NCBI GenBank assembly: GCA_965649825.1
Contig: OZ287701.1
Coordinates: 485,101 to 549,100 of the forward strand
DNA length: 64,000 nucleotides
Source of the DNA: Penicillus capitatus
Taxonomy: Eukaryota; Plantae; Chlorophyta
Direction of reading: 5' to 3'
The notes under the pieces are model-generated. The model was not told the origin of the DNA and made no database searches. It saw only the letters and a program-made list of their open reading frames with translations. A program made the position numbers and the translations under genes. Shown one piece after another: positions 12,394-49,671 of the stretch. The first letter of the stretch is position 1, and each line of letters opens with the position of its first letter.

Positions 12394-13748
12394 ATGGCAG
12401 AAACGACGACGTCGTGTGCAAGGCTTCTTACGCGAGCGCTGTGTCGTGTCCTGAGCGTCGTTTCTTCAACGGACTTGTGGACGGCCTCCGTCATTCCGCG
12501 TCGCGCTGCCTCCTCTGGGCACACACGCAAGGACACGTCTTCCATCGTCTGGCACTTCAACAGGATCCGCCGTTCGACAGCGATTCCACCCTTTACTGCA
12601 CACCGTGTTCCTAGAAATCACGTTGACGGATCGCAAATGCCCTCCGTGAAAAAACGGCGAGGAATGCGACGAACGGAGAGCCCACTGGTATGGCATGCGG
12701 CGTCGTCAACGACGCGACCGCCGCGCTGTGAATCGTGCCCAAAAACGCATCGACGTATACGACGCCACCCGTCGAGTCGCGTAGCTTCGACAGAGGAAGA
12801 ACAGAAAATCGAGTGGCGTCGGGTAACGCGACGACGGCGTTTGCGCGACGCCCGACAAAAGAACGCGTTCAGAGCGCGACGCAGAGGGCGTACCTGTGTA
12901 TCGACTGGGTAGCAGCGTGGCGATGAGTAGCTGTCTGAGAAACAAGAATTCAAGAACGAAAGAAGTCGTACGTGGTGGATCAGGTCGTAAGCGGCGTCAC
13001 ATCACATGCTGCGTCCTCTGCAATCGAAACCCTCGACGTTCTGGCGCCTACGAGGCAGACGACAAGACGTGCCGCACAGATTTAAAGGACCGTACCCCGA
13101 CCCGCCGACGCTCGAGCAATGGCGGGTCGGTTAGCGATACGCGTGTACGGCTCGTCGACAGAGTGCTGTAAATGATAGGCACCGCCCATGGAGGGAACGG
13201 AAGAAATCTTGCGCGCCGCTCTGAAGAAGCGTCGCATGCGAAGCGGTTATGACCCTAGAGAATCGGTGAAGAAGAAGGGGAAGATACCTTGGATTCTTGA
13301 TGTCGATTTTGCGACGAATGAAGTGCATTAAGGGCGACGACGTGATGCGACGTGCAGGGAATGTGGATGCAGGAGATCTGGTGCTTTGTGGATGACATGG
13401 ATCTGGCAGAGCTCAGACGCCAACGCGTTAAATTCGGACTCAAAAACGAAAACGACGCCTTTGAAATGAAGAAGGCGCTGTTTCTCTTGGTGAAGCATCA
13501 GGTGAGACATGCCTACAAATGTATCCATGGAAATGATGTGACAGCTGTGTGGGTGGGTGGGTGCACGATAGGAGTATTACCAGAAAGAAGCCGATGAGAT
13601 CATGGAACGGAGAATACGTAAAGCAAACGTACGTGCTGAGCGCCGCGCCGTGATGCGTCGTCGGTCGCATTTAAATCTTGAACCACGCAAAGGTGTGGTC
13701 TCTCACACTCTTTGGAAGAAGACATTGTGTGACAGATATGGAAGATGA
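12394..13748 (+). CDS. Multi-exon hypothetical protein with basic N-terminal (transit-peptide-like) region
   Basis: Hand-spliced exons give ...EEEQKIEWRR.../KQEFKNERSRTWWIR/FKGPYPDPPTLEQWR/APPMEGTEEILRAALKKRRMRSGYDPRESVKKKGKIPWILDVDFATNE/EIWCFVDDMDLAELRRQRVKFGLKNENDAFEMKKALFLLVKHQ/EYYQKEADEIMERRIRKAN...*. Most junctions are GT-AG; no domain was recognised. Confidence 0.55.
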
Positions 13749-14018
13749 TAGAGATCTATTAGATCTAGAAGTGGGAGTGTCCTGGGCCTTCTTGGAAGAC
13801 GTCGAAGTGCTGGGGGAATGATGAAGCTGTCACATCATTCCTCCTCTTCTGGCTCCTTCTTCACCGAGAGCAGTCCCTTCAGCTTCATAGCCAACGCCCG
13901 ATCGAGATCTGGACGCCTCTCATGTGTCACCTGAACACTCGAACGCCGTCACATCACTATCCTATGTAAGAGAGCGGGCAATCGGATTGAGTCTCAGAGC
14001 AGATCTTGATCGATCTCA

Positions 14019-14475
14019 TCAACGATGCGACAGCATCTCAACACTAGCATGAATTTTGACATCATCGACGGCAGACGCTCCCTCGTACCTTGAGGATATC
14101 TTCATAGCAGGTTTTGGCTGAGGTAAAAGGCACGATGTGTTCGATCGTGGCCGAACTGGGACGATGACTGTGTGGTTCAATTTCGATGACTTTGATCGTC
14201 CCTTCTTCATCTCCCATTGCCAAATCGAATGCCACGACATGACGCAGTCCTGTGCACAGGATGGCGTTCTATGTGTGGAGGAGGTCAGTATCTGCCGTAC
14301 CGGTGTAGCCTGCCACATGGAGGCCATAGAGGTTGCCGACTTCACTGCTCGCTTGAACGTGGCGATCGCCGCCAACCGACGTGATGCGACCTTTGATGTA
14401 TTTGCTGTTTTTCTGGACACATGACCAGACGAGTTCTGGCGAGGCGCACGGGAAATCAGAAATGTCTAAACCCAT
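14019..14475 (-). CDS. RPL28: Divergent ribosomal protein L28e-family protein
   Basis: ATG at 14475 gives MGLDISDFPCASPELVWSCVQKNSKYIKGRITSVGGDRHVQASSEVGNLYGLHVAGYTG/LRHVVAFDL..., matching the L28e N-terminal pattern (S-x-E-L-x-W-x-x-V-x-x-N...F-S-x-E-x-x-N-L...Y-S-G-L). One clear GT-AG intron. The 3' end is uncertain and the canonical C-terminal helix was not found. Confidence 0.55.
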
Positions 14476-14767
14476 CGTCGATACGGGCGATTCACCAACA
14501 GCCGCCGACACACGAACAGACGTCGCATCAAACATCCCGATCGATTGAACGAACATACACCCACCATGCATCGAACGTTCCGCGGAGCGAAGGTTGTCGC
14601 ACGGACAGCACGGCGATACACGTCCGAAACGTTTTCGAAAGTAAACAACCCGCTCCGATATCTTTCGTTCAACCGTCTCAGGTCCCTCCTTTCGTCCAAG
14701 AGGCCCCATCTTCGCCAATCGACCCTCCGACCGCGCACACTCTCGGGTATCGCACGCATCGGCACCG

Positions 14768-16797
14768 ATGAACGCTTCCAAGTGCATGATGGTGCAGAGA
14801 TGGCGGCACGGAAGAACCAAATCGCGAGCCGGTGCAGAAATGGCAGGCGATCGAGCGGGATCGTCGTGGACGATTTGGTACGACGTGGTCATCGGGACGT
14901 GGTCGATCGGGCGAAACACCGTTCGAAGAGGTTCGATCGACGCGATCGCTGTCATCGACCTTTCGATCGACGGGTCTGGCGTATCACGCATGGGAGAAAC
15001 GACTGGAGGAGAAGCCCCTTCCCGCGATGCCCATTCTCACTTCTCTGCGCCGAAAGAATGCCACGCAGCTATCGGTCGTCAACGATGACGTCATATCTAT
15101 TCTGAGAGATGTGACGACGCTCAGCGGGGCGTTCATGAGTATGTACTGCCGACATGGTAGCATGGAAGAGGCACAAAGCGTCCTCCATTCCCGCGCCATT
15201 TCTTGGATCGAGCAACTGTGCCTTCAACTGCGCGATGGCCGTTACGAATTTCCGATCGTTTCGCAGCTAGAGCCAAAGAGCATGGATCAACCCAAGTATG
15301 ATGGGACGTTGCACGAAGTGCCGCCGTGGTGGCACAAGACGATACCTGAGGCGATACGACTAACATTAGAGGCTGTGTTTGAGCCTCACTTTCTTAAAAG
15401 TGCCCACGGCTACCGTCCCGGTAAAGGATGCTACACAGCCCTGAAGGAAGTGAAGTATGGATTTGCTGGAGTGGATTACCTGATAGTCGGCGATCTGAGT
15501 CGCTGCTTAGAGACCTTTGATCAGACAATACTGCTCAATGCCATACGGGAACGCATCTCGGATCCCGCTTTTCTGAGACTTGTGGAGAAATGCTTGGCTC
15601 AAGACTATGTCGATCTGTCCGTCGTCGACTACAAGAATATCGGATTGCCGCAGCCGACGCTGTTGGGCCCCATTCTGTGCAATATCTATCTCCATGCACT
15701 GGATGTCTGGTTGCAAAATTGGTCTCAGTGTCTCAGCGTTGGCGGCGACGTGCGAGATGCCGCGGGGAATATCTATGCCGTCGTTGAGAATCGCAGGCGA
15801 TTCGGGATGACTCGTCTGGAAGATGCCAGGGCATGGAAATCGCCAACACTCCAAGGCATGACCCATGATGGGACAGCAGCTCCTTACGGATCGCATGAGA
15901 TGGCTGTGTAGGTGTGCGCTACGTCCGCTATGGGAATACGTTCTTGATCGGCGTCCACGGATCCGACAGCGATGTGGATCAGTTCGAAGTGGACCTCGCG
16001 CGCTTCATCAAGACGCGTCTCCATCTGTCATACAAGCAGTTTCAGTACAATCGTGCCTTGGCCACGTCTCCAGACAAGGAATACGTTGTCTTTCTGGGTG
16101 CCGAGGTGTACGTTGCCCCACAGATCTCTTCTCCGGGTCTGCATCCCGCATCCTCCGAGGCCGGGCAGTTACCCAACCGTCCGCGACTGTGCGTCCCAGC
16201 ACGGTTGTTGATGAAGAAGCTCGAAGAGAACGGTTTCGTCGAGACGGCGCGTAAACGGCCACGCTATTGTCATCGATTGGTCATGTGGGAATGTCATGAA
16301 ATCGTGAAGTACTATGACATCGTGATCAAGTTGTTCTGCATGTACTACACATTTGCAGACAACTATCACTGCTTGCTCCTTCTGTACGACGTCATGAAGC
16401 AATCATGCTCATTGACACTTGCCCGAAAATTGCGGCTCAAGCGCATGTGGCATGTGCATAAGCGATTGGAGAAAGATTTGATCGTGCGCGATATGGAAGG
16501 GGTGGCGCTCGCTTCCTTCGAACGTCCACGATTCGAGCGGCCGTTTGATCCATTCGTCGGTCGCGATGTGAATCCATTTGTCAGGTGTGAATCCATATGT
16601 CATCTTCTATCTATTCTCAGCAAAGAGTGTGTCTTTACCCCAATGATGTGATGGATGTGTTGTCTAGGATCGAACGCCCGTCCAGGCCGAAGTTCCCACC
16701 CGTCAAGCTAGGCGAAGCTTTTCACGAACCTCAGTTTCCCATGAGTAAAATGGAACGCTCCGTCCGTTCCAAGATTTTGGAAGGACAGCAGTCATAA
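14768..16797 (+). CDS. Nuclear-encoded group II intron maturase (nMAT-like): degenerate RT domain plus domain X
   Basis: RT motifs: EAIRLTLEAVFEPHFLKSAHGYRPGKGCYTAL, GDLSRCLETFD, GLPQPTLLGPILCNIYLHALDVW, and YVRYGNTFLIG (canonical YADD replaced by YGNT). Domain X: LCVPARLLMKKLEENGF...YYTFADNY...SCSLTLARKLRLK. Split by spliceosomal introns (~15856-15911 and 16585-16667); stop TAA at 16797. The N-terminus is R/S-rich and acid-poor. Confidence 0.9.
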
Positions 16798-17144
16798 CAA
16801 ACAACATAAGAAAGCATCATTTGACTTTTTCAAATGCGGAAAGCAAAGGCACATGGTTAGCTTTATCCGACAGTCCACGCCTATCATGTGTGCTTTATTG
16901 CAGATAGAGTGGCGGCCTCCGTTGCTGGGAAGGATGAAGAAAGGAAGGAATCAAGGAGTACACAGAAGGAGTAAGTCCGTATACGAGGCCAACAGTCAAG
17001 GATGAAGACGACAGATGTTCAGTAGATACACGTAGTAGTAGTAGTAGATTCATCTTTCAACTTGAAACAACGCATGGACGTGACTGGTAAGCTGATGAAA
17101 CGACGAGGCCATTCTCAAGAGTACTGTCATCCTTCTTCCTTTCT

Positions 17145-18596
17145 TCAAAGCAAGACTTTTCCCTCAAAGCTTGTCAACGCTATCGAAAATGCCTGGACCG
17201 TAGAAATAATAGATGGATTAAAGTCCATGATGAAAACATTGGTGTCCACCTGGGCATCACACACAGATGTCATTGCCAGGGCCCATCATGATGTGATGTG
17301 ACGTCTTGTTGGCTGTACCTTTCCGAACTGCATAACGACCTTACCAGCCCCATCCGAGTCACAGATCAGTTGGAAGTTCTTAACGGATGCGAGTTTCACA
17401 CGTCCTCTAAAATTCAGACACCAGCACTTGAGGCCTTCATTCCAGTGCGGCGGTTTATTGACGAGCTTCATGTTGCTGGAGTCCACACATTGCTGACGCG
17501 GTTCCACAGATTCCTTACACAAAACTACATCGCCCATCTCACTCTTTCATCCAAACACTCTCACTCTTAGACAGAACACACCTAGTGAAGATCGAGGAGA
17601 TATCGTCTCTGCTTCGGCTTCATCTCCTATGGGCCGATAAACTCGATGCCGATGACAGAGACGCTCCATCAGTTTTTGCCTGCGCTCCTGCTGGGCGTCA
17701 CCTCCACAGGGGAGAGAGTTATTCAATGGCTTGGGCAAAGACACATGTAACCTACACAGAGATATCCATCACACTTTTCTCTCTGTGCATCTCACTCTTT
17801 TTGACGTTTACCGTCTCGGACGCATCATCCCTTTCATTCGAAGCTTATACTTTACAGATGCAAGGGTCTCGTGTCGTGGTAAGTCCATCCCCACTTCTGA
17901 CCGGGAGAGAGCGCAGGAGAAGAAGGAGGGCTCGCATCTCGTCAGTTTATGACTGGTGCCCAGTACGTTCGATACCATCTTCGCACAAGGAAGTCCCGTT
18001 CCTTGATACGTCAAGAATATCGACGTATGCTGCCTACAGCACCCAGAGATGCCGATCGTCTCACGAGAGAGATGGCACCATGGATGCTGGGTAGCGGAGA
18101 GAAGGAATTTTGAATGTGTGGACGATGGGTCATTTCCCAAGAACAGGCGATAAAGTGTCGAGGTCCCTCTGAGCTTCCCTGTCTGGCTCTCTCGTACAAT
18201 GTAGCACTTAATCATCGCGCTTTCTGCTCGTGGACTGAGAGCAAAGAGCTGAGCGGGATGCGTCAGTGTCATGGGAGATGGTCCTTCCCAGAGATTTCGA
18301 AAAAGACGCGGGGCTGCGGCTTGTTTCCAACTCCGACAGACAGTGCTCATTGCGAAGAGAGACTGAACGGTTTGCCATCCCTGCGTGATATTCTCGAGAT
18401 TCTGCAAGATGAGGGCGACAAGCGATTCCGGCAATTCATTCCAAGGCGTCGAGGCGTCGTCGCCGTCTTCCTCGTTGTTGAGTGCGTCGCGGCGGAGAGA
18501 GGCTGTTCTGTGCGCAATGGGCGAAACGCGACGTCTTAGAAAACGTGGACGATCCTCCGAACGCACTGACGGACGCTGTCCTTCGGTTTCAACCAT
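17145..18596 (-). CDS. TLP: Tubby-like F-box protein
   Basis: N-terminal F-box ([18 protein letters not shown]...MSTVCRSWK) and C-terminal Tub domain ([33 protein letters not shown]...[16 protein letters not shown]...[14 protein letters not shown]). Confidence 0.93.
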
Positions 18597-21296: not shown

Positions 21297-24050
21297 TCAG
21301 AATTCAACCATCTGATTCTTTTTCCAGCCCAGATGAAGGAGATTCGGTTTACAGGCGATGTCCAGCATCGGCTTGGGGCCACACATCAAGACGAGACCAT
21401 CGTCTGAGGCCGAGTAGATTGATTGATTCAACATAGCTTGGTTGACAAATCCAGATGAATAGCTCCATTTGGCAGGCGGGGCATCTAACGTGTACCAGAT
21501 GTCAAAGTTGGCGTGTTGATGGGACAGCTCTTCAAGTTCTTTGTGGAGTAAGATGTCGTCAATCGATCGATTGGCATAAAGCAGCTTGATCTGCGTGGTA
21601 TCTGAAGGATCGCTCAGGACAGCTTTGATGATTTGATACATGGGTGTAATACCGGTACCTCCGGCGATCATTGAGAGCTGCTTTATCGTGCCTGGACGTC
21701 GATTCTTGATATACGTCCCTGTGCCAGTATAAGTAAAGTGTCCGATGGGGCCCTTGACATCCAAGGTGTCCCCGATCTTGAGCGTGTCCAAGTACTGTGA
21801 CATCTTGCCACCGTCCGGAAATTTGGGATGCACATGTGCGCGGTAGATCTTGACGACCAGGTCGAAATGACCCAGATCACTATCGGAGCTAGAAGGCGTG
21901 TAGGCTCTCATGCACGGCTCTCCACCAATATCTGCCACAAGAACAGATCATAAGCAGCAAAGCGGGGCGGTGTTTATCCACCTGCATAGATAAACATGTG
22001 TTGCCCAACGGGCAGTCCCAGTCGATGCTCTGGCGATGGCAGAGCAAATCGAAAGAGACGCGTGTCGTGGCTCAGCTCGATCTTTTCCGAAAGGGCAAAT
22101 GCCGTTTTCTTTTTGGGATTGAGCGCGACAAGTGCTCCTGCCGGGTCTTCTGTATCGTTCTTTGTCGGAATGGCATCGGATGGACCCGTCAGATCTCCAA
22201 TGTAGTAATTCTGTAGCAGTGCCTTGGCATTGGCAGAATGAATGGCGTTGAATTCGACGGTGGCGTCCGATCCTGCCTCGATCAGAATAGACTCGGCACC
22301 GCCAGGGTGATCCTCCAAGTAGGACGTCGCATCGTACACCTTTCCTTCGTGCACAAACCAACACGAGGCCTCTGTCCTGTGCTTGGCCACTTCCTCCATC
22401 GAAAATGTCTTCTTCGCTGAAACAGCATCCACATGGTTGGTGGTTGGGCATAGGCAGACATAGAGGTCAGGAGGTACCTGGCATCTCAAGGGGAACAGGA
22501 GGCAAGGCACTGGGAGCGGAATTCTCTCCATCCGCATTGGCCTCTTCCCTCCATCCCGTATTACCCAGAACGCCCATCTCTGTCGGCGCTGGATGTTGAA
22601 ATCTGAGGGCGATTTCGCCGTCCGTCTGTACGTGTTTGTGAATCCGAACTCTGAAATGACAGTTGTTCATCATTCCCATCACATTCCAAGTGATCTTATC
22701 CGGTTGGATGTTCTGGGATGAGTCTACCGCACGCACAAGGAGCTCCTCTGTTTTAAGGAAGTCCGAAACCTGCAGTTGCAATCGCCACATCACCCAGGTC
22801 CACGATTTCCCATAGCCGTTGTCCGAAGGCATCCGATCGATCTCGGCCTGACGCCACGTGGAGCCAGAATCGATAGAGACCTCCACTCGAATGACATAAC
22901 GGCCGCCACCCGTGTAAGCATAGCCCTTCACAGTGTACGGTTTGTCCCTCTTGAGACTCAAGGTCTCGTCATGCCACGGCCGAGCCACAGCCGAATTGAT
23001 ATTGAGCTCATTGATAATGTACTCTGGCTTGTACCACCATCCTAAAGGCAGATCTTATATACGATCGCATACGGTATGCTCAGCATGAGATACCCTCTTT
23101 CTCAGCCAGAGTCTCGTTGACATGAGGTGGCAGAACACGGTTGTCATGGTAGTGATAGAAATTCGTGCTTTCGTTGTTTGTCACAGTTATTTCGCTAAGC
23201 CATTTGACCATGCGCCCACCGATGAATCCAGGAATGATCATTCGGACGGGGAAGCCGTGATCGGGTGTCAGCCAACGGCCGTTCTGCTTGTAGGCCAAGA
23301 GAACGTCGTTGGATGGGTCCATGGCATGACCCAACGTCAGTGATGTACCGTAAGAACCGTCATCGCCTTTCGGCAACTCACCCTTCGGTCCGCGGAAGCA
23401 CACATAGTTTGCTCCCTCTCTTGGACCTTTTGTCCCCACGTGTCTCAGAATATCACTCAGTCGCACACCTAAGTCACTCAAACGTCAAATCATCTCACTC
23501 TTTTGCGCGGTGTTTACCGGTCCAGTAAGAACAGGAGGTGGCGGTGGGACCCCAGTTAAACCCAATCGACTTTTTGATCGTGTTCTCTTCTTTGCGTCGG
23601 TTGCCGGCGCAGGTGACTGTGACAGGGACAGTCACACTTTCGAATTGAATGATCTCATCCATCGTGAGTGACATGGGACGATCGACAAGTCCCGTGATCT
23701 CAACGCGATGACTTTTCCAATCCAATTTTGGCACGGCGCCGTGATTGCGCACGAGATGCAGCGAGACCGGCGTGACGAATCCCGCCTTCATGAGTAGGTC
23801 CATTGGCGGCTCGCAGTTGAGGGGATGACGTCCCGTCAGACGCAGAATCGCAGGATGGCGTGGAATCCAGCTATCCGGTGTGCCGACATCTTTCGCGTCA
23901 ATCTCGTGCGCGGGGAGGTGAAGGTCCCACGCGTCAGAGCTCTTGTCCAGCTCTATAGCACAGACGGTCGAACGAAGCCGGTCGTCATTGCGTCGTCGTA
24001 CGTTTTTCGACTGGAGCACCGAGTGCCGCGTGGGCGAGGGTGGCAGCCAT
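21297..24050 (-). CDS. NIA: Assimilatory nitrate reductase [NAD(P)H]
   Basis: Mo-cofactor domain (RLTGRHPLNCEPP, LVRNHGAVP, CAGNRRKE, PDHGFPVRMIIPGFIGGRMVKWL), dimerisation domain (WNVMGMMNNC), cytochrome b5 (HPGG), FAD domain (HRLGLPVGQH, RAYTP) and NAD domain (MIAGGTGITP, MCGP). ATG at 24050 followed by a 67-nt intron. Confidence 0.98.
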
Positions 24051-24121
24051 GACGATGAAGGAAGTTCGCAATGAAGACAAGCGGCTAAAGAATCCGAATT
24101 CGCTGATTAAATCTCAAAGCA

Positions 24122-27100
24122 ATGGGTCGCAGTAAGCGTACAGTCGCTCGAAGAATACCACATGGTGGGTGCAGTGCATAAGGATGCATCTCAGAAAGGG
24201 TTAACTGATGGAAGGGACCTACAGAAGGGGGTAATACGGGCGCGATCACGATGGGACGTCTGGAGATCGACGCATTGCCGGGAATTGCTTTCCCAAGATC
24301 GCAATCGATGCCTTTAATGCCTTGCATTATGTATTAATGGGGATTGACTGGAGTCGTTGGCGTGACAGTGATCGACTGGCGCGATGGCAGGTCGTGGTCG
24401 CGGATTAGAAATGACAAAACCTGCGTGGATGACTGGTAAGGTCGAGGGAGATGGATGTGTCTGTGCTTCAATCCTGCCTCATGCATTGCAGAGCGCGACG
24501 GAGCAAATCTGGGCGCCGGAGCACAGACCCATGCCGTAGACACCTTCCTTTCTTCGTTCCTATCGTGCCACGATGTTGTGACTCTTCAGGTCGCTGCGGC
24601 GCCACACATCGTGGCAGGTGTGAGGCGAAAGGGCGAGAGCGTCGGAAGTGACGTTTGTTGTAGGTGCGGCTTTGCGTCAGGAATCGGATTGGTCAGAGCA
24701 CACAGCGGCAGACGGGCGTAAGTACTACTATAATCGCCGTACACGTGAGTCCCGATGGGAGAAGCCGAATGAAGAGCTCTCCCAAGAAGACCAGGAAGAG
24801 GAGGCGCAGAACTGGAAGGAATTTACGGCGGCTGATGGTCGAAAGTATTACTATAACAAAGTGACGAAGAAATCGAAATGGACGCTGCCTGAAGAGATTC
24901 TCAAAGCCAAAGCAGCTCTGGCTGTCAATGAACCGAAATCGGCGGCTCCAGTTCAAGTCGTGAAGCTATCGGAAAAACGGAAAGAGCGTGCGTCGGCGCA
25001 TCAGCCATCATCCGCCGCAAAGAGCGTCAGTGTCAAAAATGATTCCGCTGCCGAACGATCTCAGAATGAAGGAAAGAAAGTGTTCAAAGCGCTCTTGACG
25101 GCGGTGCATTGCAAACCGGGATGGACATGGGATCAAGTGATGCGTGCCACGGTGCACGATGCACGTTACGGAGCATTGAGTACGTTAGCCGAGAAGAAAT
25201 CGTGCTTTGAAGAGTATCTGGATGAGATGGAGCGCAAGAGAGAGGAGGAGGAGTTAGAACGAGACAGAGTCCATCGCGATGGTCTGATCGCTCTGTTAGA
25301 CGAGCATCCCGAGATCAACTACACCACAAGGTGAGATCTGTACGAAAGAGTAACCGATGGCAGTGTGACGGAGAGACGATGTGTGATGGAAAGGTATCAC
25401 AAGGCCAAAGAGATGATTGGAGAGGATCCCAGATGGACGGCAATGGACGAGGCCTACCGCGAAACCGTCTATCTGCGATTTCTAAAAGAGAAGCGCGATC
25501 GGATGCGAGAGGCCCGACGAGAGCATCGTGATGATAACATCCGAGCTTTCAAGCAGCTGCTCATGAAATACAAAGTCAAGGTAGGTGGCGTGTCTTCTCT
25601 GTGTGTTGGTGATGATAGAGAGGGAGTGGGTGCTAGATGACAACTCCCTATCGCAGAGCCTGTCACAAGCTTCAGGGATTGGATGATTACGAAGCGCTGG
25701 ATCGATTGGATCGACTGGAGGTGTACGAATCGTACATTCGTGAATTGGAGAAAGAATACTATGACCAAGCGGAGACAGTCGAGGCACAGGAGAAGCGACA
25801 GGCTCGCAAGAACCGAGATGCCTTCAAAGAGCTCATCCAACAGCATGTCCAGGACGGTCGTGTCAGTGCCAAGATGCGGTGAGATGAATGTCTGATGTGA
25901 CGTTTGTGTGAAAGAGTGAGGGATGGGTGTGTTTAGATGGAAAGAGTTTTATGCGATGGTGGCAAAGGATCCAGCTTACTTGGCTGTAGAAGGGAATAAA
26001 TTTGGCTCAAGGCCTCGTGAGCTGTTTGAAGATACCATCGAGAAGCTGGAGGAGGATTACGACAAAGACAGGGCGTTGATGAAAGAAGTGTATCGCGGCT
26101 CGACCATTGTCGTCACCACTTCCACCAAATTTGAAGAATTCAAGAGCGCGATGGAAGCAGAGGACGAGAGAATGAAAGAGGCATCGGAACAGAACGTGTA
26201 AGGTTCCCCGCAGGGACAGGGCTAAAGGGCGAGACATGGAATCGGATGTCTAGACGGATTATCTACAGCGAGCTGTTTGCAAAAGCAACAGAGAAGGAAG
26301 AAAGAGAACGACGGCGCAGGAAGAAGGCAAAGGAAGATTTTGCGGCACTTCTCAAGAAGAGCGGCCAAGTGACGGATGCCATGACATGGGAAGAGGCAAA
26401 GGAACTCTGTTCAGACCGCATCGACCCCAAGGTCTGTCGATCTTGTTGCGCCTGAGCCTGATCCACGTGCCTTCTTTGCAGTATGAGGCTGAATGCAAGG
26501 AGGCGTTGCAGGAATACCAGAAGAAGCAACGCAAGAAGGAAGAGCGGCGAAAGAAAAGAGTGAGAGATTATAAGCGTAAGAGACGGTGGATGGACATTGT
26601 GTGCAGGGGAATTTGCCTGGGAGTTCTTCTGGGGATGAAGTGCGCCCCTCGCGCTCGCACAGAAAGCGACACGGCAGTAGTAACTCAGATACAGATGTGC
26701 GAGAAAGACCGATTCGATCCGGAAAGTAAGCAGCTTTTCTCGCTGTGTGGGGTGATCTATGTCCGATTCCTGTTGGCAAAGGTATCGTTCCGATGAAGAC
26801 GTCAATCTGGAACGCGAGGCCAAGAGGTCCAAAAAAGAGAGACACAAAGAGAGGAAACGGCATAACGAGAAGAAATACAAACACGATGGCCATCGCAAAA
26901 AGTGAGAACCGAAGAGTGATGGATGCGACAGGCAGGGAATATTCGAATGGATCGCAGGCCCCGAACAAGACGATCGCGTTCCAGGACCCGTTCGCCGTCC
27001 AGCAGACCGTCTCAACAAGAGGAACCGCGTCCAGCCGAACGTGCCAAAGAACATCCAGAGAGGCATCCGCAGAAGGAGATGACCGGACGCGGTAACATCT

Positions 27101-27278
27101 CATCGTGTCTCCTGCCGAAGGTCCCATCCGCGATGTGCCTCGTACAGATGCCGAGAAGACATCGACCGAAGAAGAGGGCGAGGCGCGACAGACGCCTGCA
27201 GAGGAGGGAGAGACACGGATGACGCCTGCGGAAGAAGGCGAAGCTGTCGAGTCTCCGGCAGAAGAAGGAGAACTGTGA
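24122..27278 (+). CDS. PRP40: Pre-mRNA-processing factor 40 (WW + FF domains, RS-like tail)
   Basis: Two WW domains (DWSEHTAADGRKYYYNRRTRESRWEKP; NWKEFTAADGRKYYYNKVTKKSKWTLPEE), several FF repeats (VFKALL...WTWDQVMR...DARYGAL), an R/S-rich C-terminus and stop TGA at 27278. The start is uncertain (ATG at 24122 or 24411). Confidence 0.93.
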
Positions 27279-27448
27279 TCGCGTCTACGCGGCACGATGT
27301 CTGTCTATATAACGACAGAACAACCCAATCCGGCTGGCTTTGAATATTGTCCATTGTCCGGCGGTCGGCCGTTAAACAGTTTGCATATTTCACGAAAAGA
27401 TCATCTTTATGAAAACAGATGAAGCATTTCTGGTTACTCCCTGTCTTT

Positions 27449-28190
27449 TCACTTTCCCTTATCCTCATCGTCATTCGAATTTTCCTCGTTACCCGCCTCA
27501 TCGAGTTGATTCCACAGGCGTTCGAGGTCTTCCAAATCGAGTTCCGGGGCACAACCGCATGCCGGAGCCTCTGGAGGCATTCCATCCCCATCACATGTCA
27601 AAGGGGTATAGTCATCATCGCAGCGCGAGGCAATCGAGTTCCTGCATTGGACACACACCGTATGTGACATTCACTCTTCGCAGCATCTGGCACTTACAGT
27701 ATAAACACAGCAGGAGCTGTCAACTCATTGGAACAGAGGACCTCAGTGAGAGCCAGCAGACATTTTTGAGTGTACTGTCGAAAGCAGAGCAAGTGTGAAA
27801 TGGCAGGAGGCTGAAAAGGATGGCGTTACTTGAGCGAAGAGCTCCATGCATCCATCCACACAGCAGCCAGAGATAACGTTCAGTTCGCCGCGACATGGCA
27901 ACAATTGCAAAGGACTGAACTCGCCGCAGCTTTCTGGAATCTCAACCGTCAAAAGCCGAACGAGATCCGTCACTAGAAGCATCCAACACCGCTATGTGAG
28001 GAAGCTCGTGTCGTTGAGCGCTTACATTGCAGAGGCACATCTGCCGTAATTTGATTCTCCGGTCGGCATCTCTGCATGGGCATAGCCGTCAGGTCGGTGG
28101 GTAGCATGGGCGACGAGGCCGTACCTGAGCATTGGCCAGATGCGAAGATGTGAGCGTCAGACAGAGAAGCGCGATAAACAGAGGAGACAT
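27449..28190 (-). CDS. Small secreted cysteine-rich protein (5 exons), prolamin/8CM-like Cys spacing
   Basis: Hand-spliced: MSPLFIALLCLTLTSSHLANAQ/RCRPENQITADVPLQ/LTDLVRLLTVEIPESCGEFSPLQLLPCRGELNVISGCCVDGCMELFAQ/YTQKCLLALTEVLCSNELTAPAVFI/LNSIASRCDDDYTPLTCDGDGMPPEAPACGCAPELDLEDLERLWNQLDEAGNEENSNDDEDKGK*. All four introns are GT-AG and in frame; clear signal peptide. Confidence 0.8.
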
Positions 28191-28484
28191 ATTGGCGAAA
28201 TGGCGCTCTTGGGAACGAGGGCGATTAAATAGTAGAAAAGTTCACAGAGGAATTCCCAGAGTTCAGGGGACGTACACAACCGACCGCGTATGAGTTAATG
28301 GGAACGCGGACGGAACAGACGGTTAGAGCCGCACTTTCCCGCGGACGCTCCAGCGACACGTCGCTCTGTTAAAGAAGGAACAACAGACATACGACCTGTT
28401 GTGTGAAATTCTGTTTAACAGGATTTCTGCCCTGCCCTTTTGCGAACATCATCTCAGTCGTCGATTCACACAGTCTCCTGCGCT

Positions 28485-31400
28485 ATGTATCGTTTGTCGC
28501 TATTTCTCTGTTGCCTTCTGGCGCTTCTGGTCTTGAGCTTTGGTCAGACCAGGCAACGTTCGCAAGTGACTTTTGGAAGGACGGACCGTTCGACCTCATG
28601 CACTATCGAGATGGTGGGAACGAAAGCAACACGGAGACGGGAAGCCACGATTACGGCACGTGTTGTCTGTGATGAGAGGACACTCTATGACCAAGAGCTT
28701 CCCCTTACGGAGCTCGACGAAACGCCACTCGATCACGTTAGCGCACGAAATGCTCGTCGGATGGTCTCATGTTGGGAATGGTTAGGGGATCCGTCTGTTC
28801 GCAGAGACATCCTTCGGAATGGCTTACGTGTACATGGGAGAAGAGACCGATGCCAATTTGGTCGGATCACTCTTTCGACGTCTTCCAGAATTTGGATCCG
28901 GTGAAATGGCTGCGCCACTGGTGATCACAGATGCGAATCTCGACATCACGAACGTTACATTCATGAACAATCAAGCCGCTTATCGAAGCGGAGCCATGAT
29001 CGTGTCCGGATCATCCAACGTCGATTTGCTCAATGTACGATCACATAGCACTGCACGAGAGATGAAGCGTGTGCGATCTGTAGTGTATCTTTTCTGGCAA
29101 CGTCGGAGAAGAAGGGGCATTACATGTGACGGAATCTGCACGCGTCGATGTGGACGTCTCGTACTTTGAGTTGAACAATGGTACGGAAGTGGGTGCGATC
29201 AAGATCGACGGTCGATCTGTGGCCAGTGTGTCCGAGTGTGCGTTTCGTGCCGATTACGGATCGGAGATGGCCAATGAGATATATGTGACGGACGATGCCA
29301 CCGCCATCATCGATGAGAGTTCGATCGATGGAGAAGACGCAGGATCGGATTTCGATGCATTTCTAAAAGATCCCAGTCGACCCGAGAGCGACGCTGAGAA
29401 CTTCGCACTTCCGATCGCCGCCATCGCCGCCGTCAGCGGGAAATCGACCGTTCTCTTCTCCGATTCCTCCGTCGGTGGACACGTCGGTCGTTTTGGAGCG
29501 ATCTACGTTACAGGCGCACCAGTTTTTCAAGCACTGAGGACAGAATTCTCGGGAAATCGGGGCGTAACGGGCGGCGGTCTGTTTGTGAATTCGCAAAGAG
29601 CAGGCTATGCTCGAGTGATGGAATGCACCTTTAAGGGCAACACAGCACGCAATGGCGGCGGTCTCGTCTTCGCAGGTATCTTTCTCAATGCCGATTCGTC
29701 GACCATAACTCAGCAACTTCTGTCGCGTCAGGCAACGGCACCTACGTCATTGACGAGTGCACCTTCAAGAACAACACAGCTCTGAATGGAGGTGCCGTGT
29801 GGGGAGACTATTCCGAAGATAACGGATGTCCCAGAGGATCGGCCGGATCAAGAATTACCATACAGGATAGCACGTGCGTTCTCCAAAACCTAACCGTTTC
29901 TATTCTCACCCCATCACACAGATTCGCGCAGAATATGGCGATCCAGAGTGGCGGTGCATTTTTTATTCGATGTACCGATATCTACGCAGAGGACTCCGTG
30001 TTCCGCCAGAACAGAGCAATGGATGGCGACGGTGGATTCGTCAACGCAGGCAGTACCTTTGATCTCCGATTCAGTGGCTGCGATTTCGATCAGAACACAG
30101 CAAGTGAGCAGCTCGTTTTTAGACTGGTGTGTTTTCTTAACTGAGTGCAACAGGTGGCAACGGCGGTGCGATTTATGTGGAGGACATGCATGATATCGTG
30201 TCTGACGCTTGCACATGGACAGGCAACAGAGCTGGTCGCAATGGCGGTGCGATTGCTTCGATTAACGGCAATGAGATTCTGTTTAAGAATTCGGAACTGC
30301 GTAAGAGTTTCAGTGGAAAACACGGAGGCGGTGTTTTCGGATCCAATCTCAAGAGAATCAAGTTTCGAGACACATCTACGGAACGGAACGAGGCGGGAGG
30401 TCGCGGTGGGGTTATTTCTGGATCCAATGTGTCGGAGTTTCGATGGCGCGATGTTATCGCCAAGATGAACCGGGCGGCGATCGCGGCGGCGATCGATATC
30501 AACGGTGGCGATCTTTTTGAAGTGAAGCAAATGCAGTTTCCAGATCACAAGGCGACGACCGGAGACGCTGGTGCTATTCAGCTGAACGGCGTGCAGAATA
30601 TTACGATCAGAGATGTGGATTTCTTGCAGAACGAGGCTGCCAAATCGTGCGGCGCGTTTTCGATCCGCCGAGCGACGAATGTGATCATCTCCGACGCGTT
30701 AGTGGAAGCGAACGTCGGTAAGAGAGGTGGTGCTGTCTGTTTGGATGACGTCGATCGCGTCGATCTGTCGTCGATTCGATTCGACTCGAACATCGCCGAA
30801 AACGGAGATGGAGGTGCACTCTACGCGAATGCATCCCGATCCGTTTCATTAAGTGACGTCGTTTTCATAAACAATAATGCCAGCAGATCGGGAGGCGCTC
30901 TATCGATTGCCGATGCCGGAGATGTCGAAATGATGGGATGTTTTGTCGAGTCGAATCGAGCCAACGATGGCGATGGTGGGGCGATCAACTTGAACGGAGG
31001 CCAGTCTCTGTCGATGACAAACGTCACGCTTCTCGAGAACGAAGCCAGCGAATCGGGCGGCGCCTTGTCGCTTGCCGATGCCGGAGATGTCGAAATGATG
31101 GGATGCGTCATCGAATCGAATCGAGCCAACGATGGCGATGGTGGGGCGATCAACTTGAAAGGAGGCCAGTCTCTGTCGCTGACAAATATCACACTTATCG
31201 AGAACAAAGCCGTCGGATCGGGAGGTGCCTTGTCGATTGCTGATGCCGGAGATGTCGGAATGATCGGATGCGTCATCGAATCGAATCGAGCCAGCAATGG
31301 CGATGGCGGCGCGTTTCATTTCAATAGAGGTCAGTCTCTGTCGATGACAAACGTCACGCTTCTCGAGAACGAAGCCAGCGAATCGGGCGGCGCCTTGTCG

Positions 31401-32466
31401 CTTGCCGATGCCGGAGATGTCGAAATGATAGGATGTTTTGTCGAGTCGAATCGAGCCAACGATGGCGATGGTGGGGCGATCAACTTGAAAGGAGGCCAGT
31501 CTCTGTCGATGACAAACATCACGCTTCTCAAGAATAACGCCAGTGGATCGGGTGGTTCTGTGGCATTGACAAATTTAGGATCAGCTTCTTTGGAGGAGAC
31601 GAAGGTCATGAACTCGACAGCGCCTTTCTCTGCCGGCGGCCTCTTGGCCGACAATGTCGCCAAAATGACACTGAACGGATCGTCCTTTTCACGATGTGTT
31701 TCGCGCGATGGTGGAGCTGCCTACTTTAAAGGCTTTTCTGAAATCGAAGGCCAAAACATATCCTTTGAACTCAACTCAGCCGAAAACGGAGGAGGCGCGT
31801 TTCTCTGCAGACGTAAGCCACTTCGATTGACAACATTCGATCACTAATCGGAATGCGTAGAGCAAACGAAGGTGGACCTGAAAGGGAGCCATTTCTATCA
31901 CAACGCAGCTCGCGATGGATCGACCCTCAATGCAGACTGCAATTGTCAAGTGGATATTCAAGATTCCGAGATCTATCGAGATGAAGATCGACCGAATAAT
32001 GGAGATTTCTTCAAGACCAATCGATACTGTAGCAGCGTCTCTACTTTGGGAAACAATTTCTTTGGCCGTCCCGAGAACACCGACACGGAATGGTATGAAT
32101 GGTTGGCGATTATCGGCGGTGCAGTCCTCGGCTTCCTTCTCCTGTCCCTTTGCTTTTGCCTTTGGCGACGACGAAGGGCTGCCACTAAAGGAACTAAGCG
32201 AATGAAATCGGACATTGAAAGTCAAGCCGATGCAAAGGTGCAGCAAACACAGCACTAGAATTGACATAGATGACTAAAAGGGGATGGTACAGGGCGAAGA
32301 TGGAGAGAGTGAGGAAGATGCAAGTGATGAAGAAGAGGACAGCGATGAAGAGTACGAAACTGATGATGGGGATACGAGGTAAGCTCTTCTCGTGTCGCAC
32401 TCTTTTTACGAGATCTTATGTTTTAGTTCGGATGGAGATGAAGATGAACGCCGAAGAAGAGAATGA
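28485..32466 (+). CDS. Type I membrane protein with Pmp-like (GGA / FxxN) right-handed beta-helix ectodomain
   Basis: Signal peptide MYRLSLFLCCLLALLVLSFG. Dozens of F/VxxN...GGA[I/L/V] motifs (ORFs 29126-29785 and 30177-31847). A single TM helix (WLAIIGGAVLGFLLLSLCFCLW-RRRR) and an acidic cytoplasmic tail (GEDGESEEDASDEEEDSDEE...). Multiple GT-AG introns. Confidence 0.85.
30891..31550 (+). repeat. Coding tandem repeat, 4 x 165 bp (55 aa)
   Basis: Unit GGALS[I/L]ADAGDVEMMGCxxESNRANDGDGGAINLxGGQSLSMTNVTLLENEASES starts at 30891, 31056, 31221 and 31386. Confidence 0.95.
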
Positions 32467-44085: not shown

Positions 44086-47000
44086 TTATGCCTCGACGGC
44101 CAATTGCTCGGCATTGTCGGGGTCTCCAGATGTACCGCACAATTTGCCAATCGAATATTTGAACTCGTAGCTGATCCAGTGCGCCAGAACGCGAAACATG
44201 CCAGCGTCAGGTGCGACGTGCTCGTTGCGGTCCCTTAGCTTATACTTCAGGAACTCAGCTGCAAACTTGAGAATGTAGAAAAGGAAAACGCAAAATACGA
44301 TGACATTCAGCAAAGCGCACGCGACTGTGAGCAACTCGCGAGTGACGTTTTCCGGATAACTCTCGTCTTTGAGCATGGAAGCTGCCAACGTCGTCGCCAC
44401 TGACACGAAAAGAGACGCCAGTTCCATTCCATTGAGGTCTTTGAAGTCTTCACGAAACGGCGTTGCCAGAATCTGAGACAGGATGGCAAGCATGATGACA
44501 TATGCGACGCCGGTGATTGGCAGTCCGCTGTCGAACAGGTGCGCGCAGAACACCAGAAAAGCAATAATGGCCTTCCTTGCGACGATGGCAACTTCCCAGT
44601 ATCGGCGATGATCCATTCTGTAAGATCGGTAAAGAAATCCTGTCGTCTGGTACGCCCAGCTGCTCTTGTGGCTAAGGTGTTGCGGCGACCTCTTGAGGAA
44701 GACGACGAAAAGCGCGAGCAGTCCGCCGTACACTGGACACACGAACGCAACGACCACTCCGCAGAGGAGTTTCGCGTGGTCGCCTTCGTAGCACCTCATG
44801 CCCGTGTCGACAGCCCAGTATGTGCGGGTCGCGTTGACTTGCGTAAAGTCTGCTGAGTCGTGCACGTTGACGCAGAGGAAGACGCTCAATGCGGTCTTCA
44901 ACACCGGCACAAGCGTAACATACCAGATGACCATCGCCGAAAGCACGGATCTCTTCGGCAGGAAGCGTTGAAGTCTGTTGCTTTCGGGTCTCGCCGATCT
45001 CGCCGCCCAGAACACGATCCAACAGAGAAGCACGGAGCATGGGACGATGCACACGCTGACGACGAGTGCCAGAGCTGTCGGCTGCAAGGACAGGTGTTCT
45101 GACGTCAGACACACGACGGATCCCCGAATGCCTTCAGACGCGAGACCTCCAAGTAACTCTGGCGGCAGAAAGAAAGTCGACACGCGGAAACCTATGAAAT
45201 TTTGGTCTCACCTGCCACTGTCGCCATAACGATCACAGGAATCGCCCATCTTACGTCAAGAGAAGCCAGAAGAACAGTCGTTTGGACGTAGCTCAGAGTG
45301 ATCTACAAGACAATGAGTTCAGTGCGAGCTAAGTAGGTTGACGTGTGCCTTGAACATTTCGACGGCTTTCCATTTGGCCAAAGTTTTTTCGGAAGCAGGC
45401 ACTCCGGCGGTTTCGATCTAAAGCTTACTCGTTCGGGTGGATGCGCTGATGATGTGATTCTAGACTTACTTCCCTTCCGAGGCGTGGCGATTCGATGACT
45501 TCCTCCGACGTAGACGGTGCTCTCTGCTCATGAGTCTGCACGGTCTCTCCGCGAAGAACGCTGACCGTGCCGTGGATCGTTATGCCCGTCATAACCAGAA
45601 GAATGATCACCGACGTCAGAATGTAGATCACGTTGAAGATGCCCTTCAAGCACCGTTTGCATTTGGAGGATAGACCTGACCCGAAGTCGTCCTCACAAGA
45701 TCCACAGAGCGGTCCTGTGTGACCCTTCGAAGAAACAATCGTATGATTCAAACGTCCGAAGAGTCAAGTATGTAGTTTACTTCGGCACATTGAGCTTGCA
45801 TGTAATCTTCGATCCATTCTTCTTCGAGATCACAGCTCGAGACATTTTCAACCATGGCATTCAACTTTTCGGAACGGCCTTGGAACTCACATGCGGAGGC
45901 AGGCAGACATCTGTGAAGATTATCAGAGCACGGCGTCTTCAGCCAGTAGCCTTCTTCTGGTGTGATCACTCGAGATTCGCAGTTCCCATTCTCCGGACAA
46001 GGATGGCAAACGGTCGCTGAAAGGAGGAAGTTGTACGTCGTGCTGCTGCAGCTCTCACAGAATCCAGCATTCGACACAAACTCGCCGACGGAACAGTTGT
46101 GGACTCTCACGGTAATCCCGACGTCCTTGATTGCCTCTCTGTCAAATTCGACGATCAAGCTGTACTCTCCCGGAGGTACGAAGCCTTTGATGGATTGAAA
46201 TCTACAGGATCCGTTCTCCATCGACAGAAGAATCGGCCAAGCCAAGAATTCACGACTCGGCGAGAACATGTTAGCATTGACTCGGCGGATGACTCTTGTA
46301 ATTCTTTGCCCCAGTCCATCGAGTAGCTTCACCGTCGCCGTCGGCAGATCTGTGCCAATTTGGTATCCATCTATCACACAGTTCGCTCCTCCGCTCACGC
46401 AGATGATCTTGTTGGCGTCCTCTAGTGTCATCTGTGCAGCTGAGGCATACGTCGCGACATCCTGTCCATAGACCTCGGCTCGATTGCCTTTCCACGACGA
46501 GCAGATGTCCTTTTCCGATGCGACATATCTCAGATCTTTCCACTCTTGCTCCTTGTAAAAGTCTAATCCTGCGTCTGACGAAGCTTCGGTGCAATGAAAA
46601 CGGATGGCTTCTAAGTATCCAGCGAAGACTGCTCCTCCCGCGATGCTGGCTTCATTGCTTGAGAACTGTGTTCCCGACAAAACCATGACGGGACAGTCGG
46701 TGCCGTTGGCGAGGCATTCTTCTATGCTTTCACTGTAGTCGTAGAAGAGTGCACCTAGAAGTACGCATCGTTGACGGTCAGTCTTACAAAAAAAGGTCGG
46801 TGCCTACCTCCCACCTTGGCCACATTGTTCTCGAATTGACTTTGGACTAATTGCAAAGCCAGACTCTGATCCAAATCAGCGTCAAAGAAGATTACACCGC
46901 CATTGCCTCCTCTCGCCGAGTTGTTGTGAAGCTTACAGTCCGAACAAAGGACGGTTGATGACTCAAAGCCATACACACCACCACCGCTTTCGTCCGCTTG

Positions 47001-49671
47001 GGCATAGAGAATGGAGAGATTGCGCGCTACCAAATGAGACTCCTTTGACCAGATTGCTCCGCCGTTTTTGGACTTTGCTCGTTCAACCGTAGAGTCGACG
47101 ATAAGGATCGAGCTGTTTTTAATTGCCGCAGCAAAACCACCAGAGATCTTTGCAGAGCTGCGAAGGAATTGTGATTGCGCGACGTCCAGACTCGAAGTCC
47201 CTGACCAGAGGAAGCCACCGTATTTGGATCTGCTATTGACAGCGACGGTAGCCTTCACTATTATTATTGAGTTGCTCGAGTACAGGAATCCACCGCTCTT
47301 CTCTGCGCTGTTGTCCGTCGCATTAGTGTGCTCGAACGTCACATTCGAATTGTCAGCGTAGAAGAACGCGCCATAAGCCGCTCTGCTAGCCGTAGCGTTC
47401 GTACAGACCAGCCTCACTGTCGACTTCACAGCATCACAGAACCCGCCATTCGCCTCTGCGCTGTTGCCAATCGCGTTCGTGTCCCTGAGCGTCACATCTG
47501 ATTCTTCAGCCCATGCGAATCCGCCATGTTTCTCTGCGCTGTTGCCAGTCGCATCGGTGCGATCCAGCGCCATTCTCGATTTTAATGCACAGACGCATCC
47601 GCCCCATTGTGCCTTGTTGTCGGCGGCGTTTGTGCCGGATAGCTTCGCCATCGAATTGCTCGAGTACAGGAATCCGCCATGTTTCTCTGCGCTGTTGCCA
47701 GTCGCATCGGTGCGATCCAGCGCCATTCTCGATTTTAATGCACAGACGAAACCGCCCCATTGTGCCTTGTTGTCGGCGGCGTTTGTGCCGGATAGCTTCG
47801 CCATCGAATTGCTCGAGTACAGGAATCCGCCATGTTTCTCTGCGCTGTTGCCAGTCGCATCGGTGCGATCCAGCGCCATTCTCGATTTTAATGCACAGAC
47901 GCATCCGCCCCATTGTGCCTTGTTGTCGGCGGCGTTTGTGCCGGATAGCTTCGCCATCGAATTGCTCGAGTACAGGAATCCGCCATGTTTCTCTGCGCTG
48001 TTGCCAGTCGCATCGGTGCGATTCAGCGTTACTCTCGAGTTCTTCGCATAGACGCATCCGCCCCACTGCGCCCTGTTGTCGGCGGCGTTCGTGTCTATGA
48101 GCTTCGACTCTGAGTCTTCCACGTAGACACAACCACCCTTGTCAAATGCGACATTATCCTGGAACACGGAGCCGAACACTGAAATCTTCGACCCGTAGCC
48201 ATAGATCACGGATCCTCTTAAGCCCTCATTTGCACCGAACGTGCAGTTCTCTATTTGGACAGACGACCTCACTGAATGAACACAGTTACTCTTCATTCCC
48301 TCGTTGACTCGCGTGCTTAAAGCATTCCTCCTGAACGATGCATTCGAAAGTGAAATGTCGCCTTCTTCGATTCGAATGATCGTCAGGTTGTTTTCGGATA
48401 CGGCGAATCCCTGGATCGTGGTTTTTGATGAGTTGTGACCGTAGAACAAGGAAGACTGCTGCCCATCAGCCCCGGCGACTCTGTTTCCGGATACGGTGCA
48501 ATCTTCCAGTCGGTTCTTCTGTGCGAGGTGAACTCCACAGGCTTCGCCTGAGCAGACGTTGTCCGAGATCGCCACTTTGACCATCTCTAGTTCTGAGCAG
48601 GATGGAGAAGTCAACCGGAGTGCCGACGCTGCAGTCAGGTCGTTCTGACGAAACGTGAAGCGGTGCAGAGCCACGAGACCGGCGGCAGCTTCATTGCGGC
48701 ATGCCTCGACTTCGATAAGTGACCGGGCTTCATGTGTGCCGTCGAATACGCACTCTTCGATGGTAAGATTGACAAAGGTAACATTTCTGGACCTACAGGC
48801 GAAAAAAGGATTACCGTCTCACTCGAAGCTGTCTGTCTTACTTTATGAGAAATAGTCCTGTGTTTTTCTGAGGACATGTGAATCTTGTCTTTGTGGTTGA
48901 ACTTTGGGAGACGGCGTCTTTAGAGTCGACGCCGCTGATTTGGGTGGTGAGGGTCAGTTGCCATGGAATGGTGACAGGCGACGATGGACGCACCACGTCT
49001 GTCACGTCAAACGCGAGTACATCGCCTTGCTTTGTGCAGTTGACTAGCATCTGCAGGTCGTTGTCTACTTCTTTAAGGACGCCGTTGTCGACGAGCCATG
49101 TTTTGCCATCTGCTGTAGTATACCTTTCCTTGGCCTCTCGCGTCAAGGCACATGCGAACCCTGACAAGTTCAAACGCCGTCAGAATTCAGCGTTCTGTGC
49201 GATGGACAGGAAAAGTCGAACCTGTAGCGATTCCTTGGTTGGATATGCTGTAAAGTGGTGGAGCGCGCTCCTCGTTTGCCATCTGCAGACAAAAGACGGA
49301 ATGGTTTACGCCTTCGCCGTCGAATGGCGACAGGCGAATTCGTGGCTTACGTCTTGAGGATGCTTTGCGGTGAGGTCGGCTGGCGTTTCAGACGATGTGG
49401 GAGGCAGTTTGTCGTCCGTGTTGCCTAAAACGCAACACAGCACCGCTGGAGAGATGCTACGATGCGAGTAAAGGAGAACCGTCGGCTGCAGAAACTGCGT
49501 CTGGCGGACGCAGCGACGCGCTTTGAACAGCGCAAGTAAGTCCGACTCCATGCGCGAGCGCGCAGCAGAGCAGACAGAGTTTGAAACGAGGAAGAAAATT
49601 TCGCATCGTGTGGACGTAGAACGCAGAAAGAAACGTTGCAGAGTGATCTGTTTCGTTTTCAGAATCATCAT
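44086..49671 (-). CDS. Large receptor-like membrane protein: Pmp-like beta-helix ectodomain, Cys-rich stalk, multi-pass (about 7 TM) C-terminus
   Basis: GG[F/C/A]-xxN repeats (46755-48674). Cys-rich CxxC...CP...C...GYW...C (45748-46686). GHTGPLCGSC, then MFK/ITLSYVQ, then a multi-TM region with FLYRSYR...YWEVAIVARK (44086-45183). The start codon is uncertain. Confidence 0.87.
47518..48020 (-). repeat. Near-perfect coding tandem repeat, about 3.3 x 153 bp (51 aa)
   Basis: ccgccatgtttctctgcgctg recurs at 47521, 47674, 47827 and 47980. Unit KAQWGG[C/F]VCALKSRMALDRTDATGNSAEKHGGFLYSSNSMAKLSGTNAADN; the full copies appear to differ only at the C/F codon. Confidence 0.96.

Follow-up and report, generated by a model that had tools for sequence, protein, structure and literature searches.

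Nuclear group II maturases have so far been treated as a land-plant feature: in the literature searched, they are reported solely from land plants (nMAT1-4, with relatives in bryophytes and lycophytes), where they derive from land-plant mitochondrial maturases (PMC4424553, PMC3927076, PMC10012718). The type I proteins nMAT1 and nMAT2 of Arabidopsis are encoded by free-standing nuclear genes of mitochondrial-lineage group II origin, in which domain X is conserved, the reverse transcriptase (RT) domain is degenerate and the D and endonuclease (En) domains are absent. They carry a mitochondrial presequence, act in trans on several mitochondrial group II introns to splice them and have been traced to a Marchantia mat-Mpo1-like mitochondrial gene (PMC3927076). 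For chlorophytes, a plastome paper merely speculates on nuclear maturases (PMC5088586); the terms maturase, group II, reverse transcriptase and splicing are all absent from the Ostreobium genome preprint, and the Bryopsis genome preprint uses 'maturase' for organellar open reading frames (ORFs) only. Here we describe a gene of the siphonous green alga Penicillus capitatus that is probably an independent chlorophyte instance of the nuclear-encoded maturases. It is modelled at 14566-16797 on the + strand of a 64,000-nucleotide (nt) stretch of contig OZ287701.1 (positions 485,101 to 549,100), hereafter the window. A first-pass annotation of the window had proposed a domesticated nuclear maturase without a described chlorophyte equivalent; the literature searched bears out the latter statement, and every test run (synteny, introns, selection, loss of YADD and En, and absence of a ribozyme) favours the former.

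The algal gene resembles nMAT1 and nMAT2 in being free-standing, with X conserved, RT degenerate and En absent, but its host belongs to the chlorophyte order Bryopsidales instead of the embryophytes, its RT5 motif is Y-G-x-x throughout its clade, and it has lineage-specific spliceosomal introns of its own, GC-AG introns included. Its presequence is a prediction, its function is proposed by analogy and its origin is probably separate. MatR and MatK are splicing-only maturases that likewise have X conserved, RT degenerate and En absent, each serving several introns (PMC3927076), as the algal protein may do; they are still encoded within organellar introns, whereas the algal gene is nuclear. With proteins encoded by group II introns, for example LtrA and the cox1-intron RT/maturases, the algal protein has the RT0-7 and domain X scaffold in common. 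Unlike them, it is encoded outside any intron and outside the organelle genome, lacks YADD and HNH, and is split by spliceosomal introns.

The maturase fold of the protein was recovered at the levels of family, sequence and predicted structure. Pfam family PF01348 (Intron_maturas2, domain X) matched residues 431-529, encoded at 16178-16474 on the + strand, with an E value of 1.6e-17 (64 bits; cut-off 20.8), and RVT_1 matched 15321-15719 at 3.2e-5, under the Pfam gathering cut-off. The best match among PDB sequences was Lactococcus LtrA (phmmer, 1.4e-32), aligned over residues 100-294 within exon 2 and 337-515 within exon 3; other group II RTs came next. An AlphaFold model built from 13 sequences has a mean predicted local distance difference test (pLDDT) score of 65; it is confident in its core, residues 112-600, and of low confidence outside it, at 1-111 and 601-644. 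Foldseek matched the model best to 8h2h_D, LtrA bound to its intron (E 2e-16, 563 columns). The RT subdomains and clear domain X noted in the first-pass annotation are therefore well founded.

Each of the functions needed for mobility has been lost, as the same annotation had described. The catalytic YADD of RT5 is replaced by YGNT (15929-15940, +; VRYVRYGNTF in the translation), with LtrA YVRYADDF aligned to YVRYGNTF. The protein terminates ~60 amino acids (aa) past domain X, and neither HNH/Zn or Cys/His motifs nor PF21368 were found in it. Homology to the canonical protein P0003 stops just short of the Cys/His HNH motifs of the latter, and relatives such as P0003 carry the PF21368 HNH domain. 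Rfam detected no RNA family, group II ribozymes included, in the whole window at the gathering threshold, and none in 12500-18500 at E<=1. Having lost YADD and the HNH endonuclease, the protein is therefore unable to reverse-transcribe or home. The RNA-binding scaffold of a maturase, comprising RT fingers and palm and the domain X thumb, is retained; the polymerase site, the endonuclease and the ribozyme are gone.

The coding sequence is interrupted by spliceosomal introns. On the + strand the ORF list contains 14832-15911 in frame 0, 15914-16651 in frame 2 and a short ORF at 16597-16797. Excision of 15856-15911 (intron 1, GC..AG, 56 nt, directly before RT5) and 16585-16667 (intron 2, GT..AG, 83 nt, at the junction of NPFVR and IERPSRP) yields a single reading frame ending in TAA at 16795-16797, and each excision gives a gapless alignment to the orthologues. 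Six orthologous genomic loci were compared: L006 (ENA), L007, L008, L010 and two of Caulerpa type with 42% GC (L001 and L002). Intron 1 has identical position and phase in four species, represented by the window, L006 (GC..AG), L008 (GC..AG, 128 nt) and L007 (GTAAAA..AG, 42 nt). L001, L002 and L010 lack it, and L010 has an intron of its own within RT0. Intron 2 interrupts NPF(V/I)R and IERPSRP at identical position and phase in six loci (window, L006, L007, L008, L001 and L002), with lengths of 52 to ~87 nt and unrelated sequences; the Caulerpa lentillifera gene model P0002 reads across this position. Because the positions are conserved, the lengths vary and the ends are GT/GC..AG, the interruptions are spliceosomal introns, and both of those first proposed, including the one called 'probably GC-AG', are real. 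An alternative donor for intron 1, GT at 15814 (98 nt), was rejected, as its use would cost the protein 14 residues (LEDARAWKSPTLQG) at which the orthologues are conserved. GC donors recur among these genes (window 15856-15857, L006 9661 and 10833, L008 10827): three species use one for intron 1, L006 has one at the inferred first intron as well, and intron 1 of L007 has the canonical GTAAAA.

The introns divide the coding region between recognizable protein parts. Exon 2 (14798-15855, +) encodes a low-complexity N-terminal extension followed by RT0-RT4, that is, the fingers and part of the palm, and is indel-free against L006 over its 1058 nt. Exon 3 (15912-16584, +; 673 nt, likewise indel-free) encodes RT5-RT7 and the domain X thumb, and exon 4 (16668-16797, +) a C-terminal tail, all that is left of the beginning of domain D, up to the TAA stop, with the HNH endonuclease absent. 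The tail is kept in all orthologues.

The gene stands among ordinary nuclear genes, as first described. Downstream lie genes of the Tubby/F-box, nitrate-reductase and WW/FF types, the second of them with an intron of 50 nt. Upstream, head-to-head with the maturase gene, is a ribosomal L28e-like gene with its first exons at 14062-14476 (-; a weak Pfam Ribosomal_L28e match of 6.9e-5, under the cut-off), followed further upstream by a multi-exon 1,3-beta-glucan synthase gene. The maturase gene is single-copy within the window, and the gene order around it is identical in L006 and L008. Conserved spliceosomal introns together with this conserved microsynteny show that it is a free-standing nuclear gene. 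The pairing of the L28e-like and maturase genes is also kept in L006, L008 and Caulerpa L001, and such conserved head-to-head pairing suggests a shared bidirectional promoter.

The maturase gene is under purifying selection, strongest on domain X. Between the window and L006, the synonymous (dS) and nonsynonymous (dN) divergences are 0.38 and 0.067, giving a dN/dS of 0.178; by region the ratio is 0.05 in domain X, where constraint is greatest, 0.08 in the C-terminal tail and 0.19-0.22 in the RT region, and for exon 2 it is ~0.19-0.27. No frame-breaking indel was found against L006 in 1974 nt of exons, and the three introns carry indels of 2, 2 and 6 nt. Between the Caulerpa-type loci L001 and L002 the dN/dS is 0.095. 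Against Caulerpa, synonymous sites of the window gene are saturated, yet the proteins still align without gaps across ~588 aa.

We then placed the protein among its relatives. An exhaustive HMMER search of 1.84 billion representative proteins gave 6844 matches, of which a handful stood above the ~30-33% identity background of ordinary intron proteins, with none between 46% and ~33%. Protein identity to the window is 88% for L006 and 56% for L008; the named orthologues are both from Bryopsidales, Caulerpa lentillifera g4224.t1 (EukProt, 60%) and Ostreobium quekettii evm.model.scf_116.7 (P0012, 46%). The window thus comes from a Bryopsidales-type chlorophyte nearer to Caulerpa than to O. quekettii; a GC content near 51% had suggested O. 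quekettii itself, a reading rejected on the 46% identity of P0012. A tree of 161 sequences, among them the reconstructed orthologues and the 150 best relatives, was built by neighbor joining (NJ) with Kimura distances from a MAFFT --auto alignment, with 100 bootstraps. Ten sequences including the window protein form one clade (100/100) apart from the organellar intron proteins, and within it the window, L006, L007, L008 and Caulerpa sequences group at 100. RT5 reads Y-G-x-x in 10/10 members (YGNT, YGTN, YGNN, YGAN, YGGN or YGSD), whereas YADD is retained in 103 of the 161 tree sequences; none of the ten has an HNH motif, and in L001 the RT3 Asp is lost as well. The nearest canonical relatives are the mitochondrial cox1-intron ORFs P0003 and P0004, which are 30-32% identical and have both YADD and HNH. 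In our preferred reading the gene is older than the divergence of Ostreobium from Caulerpa. Two database entries for orthologues have peculiarities of their own. The 1047-aa P0012 has a ~480-residue N-terminal extension absent from other orthologues, possibly an annotation-pipeline fusion of two adjacent genes. P0017 (ENA, 938 bp), an N-terminal orthologue fragment, ends in DRKSTRLNSSH, a translated Illumina adapter that marks adapter read-through in a public contig.

The start of the gene differs from that first assigned. The ATG at 14768 is in frame 2, while the coding sequence shared with Caulerpa and L006 is read in frame 0, starting at ~14798; this ATG also falls within 14682-14797, a segment that is intron-like in comparison with L006 (69% identity, 2-nt indel). 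In frame 0, upstream of the conserved coding sequence, there is a stop at 14787, and the first ATG does not occur before 15027. Comparison with L006 points to an additional first exon at 14566-14681 (+), which opens with ATG, spans 38 codons (MHRTFRGAKVVARTARRYTSETFSKVNNPLRYLSFNRLR) and encodes a basic, presequence-like peptide; it is 96% identical to L006 at the nt level and indel-free. In the nucleotide alignment, similarity is lost at 14682 and regained at GCAG/AG. The intervening putative intron 0 (14682-14797, +; GT..AG, 116 nt) has the donor cag/GTCCCT and the acceptor GTGCAG, and its splicing would be required because exon 1, in frame 1, must join frame 0. An N-terminal intron at 14747-14799 (53 nt) was considered and dropped in favor of 14682-14797, since conservation ends at 14682 and the first AG, at 14796-97, is the natural acceptor. 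The likely start of the maturase is thus ATG 14566, and we infer that exon 1 and its intron belong to the gene model, which in full comprises the four exons 14566-14681, 14798-15855, 15912-16584 and 16668-16797, with a product of ~658 aa. The R/S-rich, acid-poor sequence described in the first-pass annotation is not the real N-terminus, although the better-supported exon 1 is of the same character.

We think it likely that this nuclear gene arose from a mitochondrial-lineage group II intron protein, separately from the nMATs, and that its product is imported into an organelle and splices ORF-less introns in trans. The mRNA would be made and spliced in the nucleus and translated in the cytosol, and the short basic N-terminal presequence would send the maturase to an organelle, most likely the mitochondrion. 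There it would bind ORF-less group II introns in trans and stabilize their active fold for splicing, by analogy with nMAT1-4. By composition and hydrophobic moment (muH), the predicted exon 1 peptide has 10 K+R against 1 D+E, its first acidic residue at position 21 and a high helical muH of 0.87, and is thus presequence-like. L008 and Caulerpa L001 have comparable short basic first exons with in-frame splice options, placed between the conserved exon and the upstream gene that they share with the window. The mitochondrion is favored because the closest canonical relatives are mitochondrial and because the mitochondrial DNA (mtDNA) of O. quekettii is rich in group II introns and poor in RVT ORFs, with 47 introns, 28 of them group II, and RVT domains in only four ORFs (PMC6944098). 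This imbalance gives circumstantial support to ORF-less mitochondrial group II introns as plausible clients, which the protein would help to splice in trans by analogy with nMATs.

Several points weigh against this reading. Exon 1 was delimited by one close comparison, that with L006, in which the counterpart of 14682-14797 is 114 nt long and in frame even if unspliced. A junction-spanning search for the spliced maturase returned unspliced genomic ORFs only, and P0013 (ENA) is a record of the unspliced ORF of the window gene. The ATGs of the L28e-like and maturase genes lie ~90 bp apart, head-to-head. As to the destination, mitochondrial and plastid presequences of chlorophytes are hard to distinguish, and the general likeness of the two in green algae leaves room for the same domesticated maturase to be imported into the plastid, or dually targeted, and to splice plastid group II introns. 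Bryopsidales plastids also hold such introns, which were abundant early in these genomes and are still present in several lineages (PMC5888179), and Arabidopsis nMAT4 is possibly dual-localized (PMC3927076). We nevertheless consider a plastid function unlikely: the canonical proteins closest to it are encoded in mitochondrial cox1 introns, Bryopsidales mitochondria are the compartment richer in group II introns and poor in ORFs, and exon 1 encodes a short, Arg-rich amphipathic peptide of the typical mitochondrial kind. A lower chance still is given to a domesticated RT-like RNA-binding protein with another job, such as a cytosolic or nuclear RNA chaperone or a factor in other organellar RNA processing. 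Residues 1-111 are predicted to be disordered, the targeting exon is a prediction, and RT-derived proteins have been co-opted elsewhere, as in Prp8 (PMC8393795), but constraint peaks in the maturase/thumb region, domain X, the protein keeps the entire RT-X scaffold with which LtrA contacts intron RNA, ORF-less group II introns are numerous in the organelles of this lineage, and the architecture fits that of type I plant nMATs.

That shared architecture (RT degenerate, X kept, En absent) would also suit an orthologue of the land-plant nMATs, inherited through a transfer in the common green ancestor or acquired from plants. We regard orthology as highly improbable all the same, as published phylogenies derive nMAT1/2 and nMAT3/4 from land-plant mitochondrial maturases of the types that Marchantia has as mat-Mpo1 and cobi84 (families F03 and F10; PMC3927076, PMC10012718), members of the clade in the exhaustive search are of Bryopsidales type only, with no match between 46% and ~33% identity, and no plant protein occurs among the nameable matches; a profile search for plant nMATs gave 14 matches, none from plants. 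A transfer independent of plant nMATs is most likely, because the clade is separate from its 150 best relatives and the published origins of nMATs lie in land-plant mitochondrial maturases. The first-pass annotation had also raised a relic of organellar DNA in the nucleus, mitochondrial (NUMT) or plastid (NUPT) in origin and evolving neutrally. Loss of the catalytic motif and En would fit such decay, as would an ORF that is broken twice when read unspliced. The spliced ORF is, however, intact in at least six loci of different species with dN/dS of 0.10-0.18, the interruptions have conserved positions, GT/GC..AG ends and variable length, synteny is conserved, and the Rfam scans of the window and of 12500-18500 gave no organellar-type intron or exon DNA in the flanks. 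The selection pattern and the intact exons therefore rule out a decaying NUMT, and a relic of any kind receives next to no credence. Equally slight is the probability of an active nuclear retroelement, be it of the mobile group II intron type or of the non-LTR (long terminal repeat) type: RT homology speaks for it, against a single copy in the window that is syntenic across species, the loss of both YADD Asp residues and the absence of endonuclease and ribozyme.

The domesticated maturase of the window is not alone in these algae. A second family (P0075, P0045 and P0080/P0172) is also En-less and has a degenerate RT5 (CGSS, YAGT or HGVN). P0075 is encoded at L009 8001-9668 (Logan SRR33785045), on a 207-kb contig among the nuclear genes VDE, aldehyde dehydrogenase, Tra1 and Rad17, and P0075 and the orthologue L008 come from one sequencing sample; the algae therefore contain at least two nuclear maturase-like families. 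The second family is not present within the window. In the NJ tree, P0045, P0075 and P0080 are sister to the window clade in 97/100 bootstraps. This grouping may reflect long-branch attraction, which is suspected because the window protein is ~26-28% identical to the second family, less than the 32% to canonical P0003. More speculatively, and with a confidence that stays on the doubtful side, siphonous green algae might have independently built a small nuclear maturase toolkit of at least two ancient, catalytically dead families, that of the window gene and that of P0075, serving in trans as a general splicing apparatus for the proliferating ORF-less group II introns of their inflated mitochondrial, perhaps also plastid, genomes. 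If true, the passage from self-contained introns towards a shared protein-dependent, spliceosome-like system would have been replayed convergently outside land plants.

A conserved, selected, RT-dead and En-less nuclear maturase in Bryopsidales would be a second, probably independent, occurrence of such genes, in a lineage with mtDNA swollen by ORF-poor group II introns. It offers a natural comparison for organellar introns becoming reliant on trans-acting host factors, a model often cited for spliceosome origins, and a possible explanation for the persistence of ORF-less introns in these algae. It also provides candidate genes for experiments in Bryopsis, which has described cell-biological tools.

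Other parts of the window contain features apart from the maturase gene. Long ORFs at 29126-31847 (+) encode a right-handed beta-helix/Chlamydia-PMP-repeat protein (Pfam Beta_helix 1e-14, Chlam_PMP 1.6e-11), in which 30879-31552 comprises 4.1 copies of a 165-nt (55-aa) tandem repeat. For three long ORFs of 365, 312 and 639 aa at 44086-48674 (-), Pfam gave no match at E<=0.001. Some 8 kb at 24001-32000 differ from the rest of the window in their marked positive skew of GC (up to 0.22), accompanied by AT skew.

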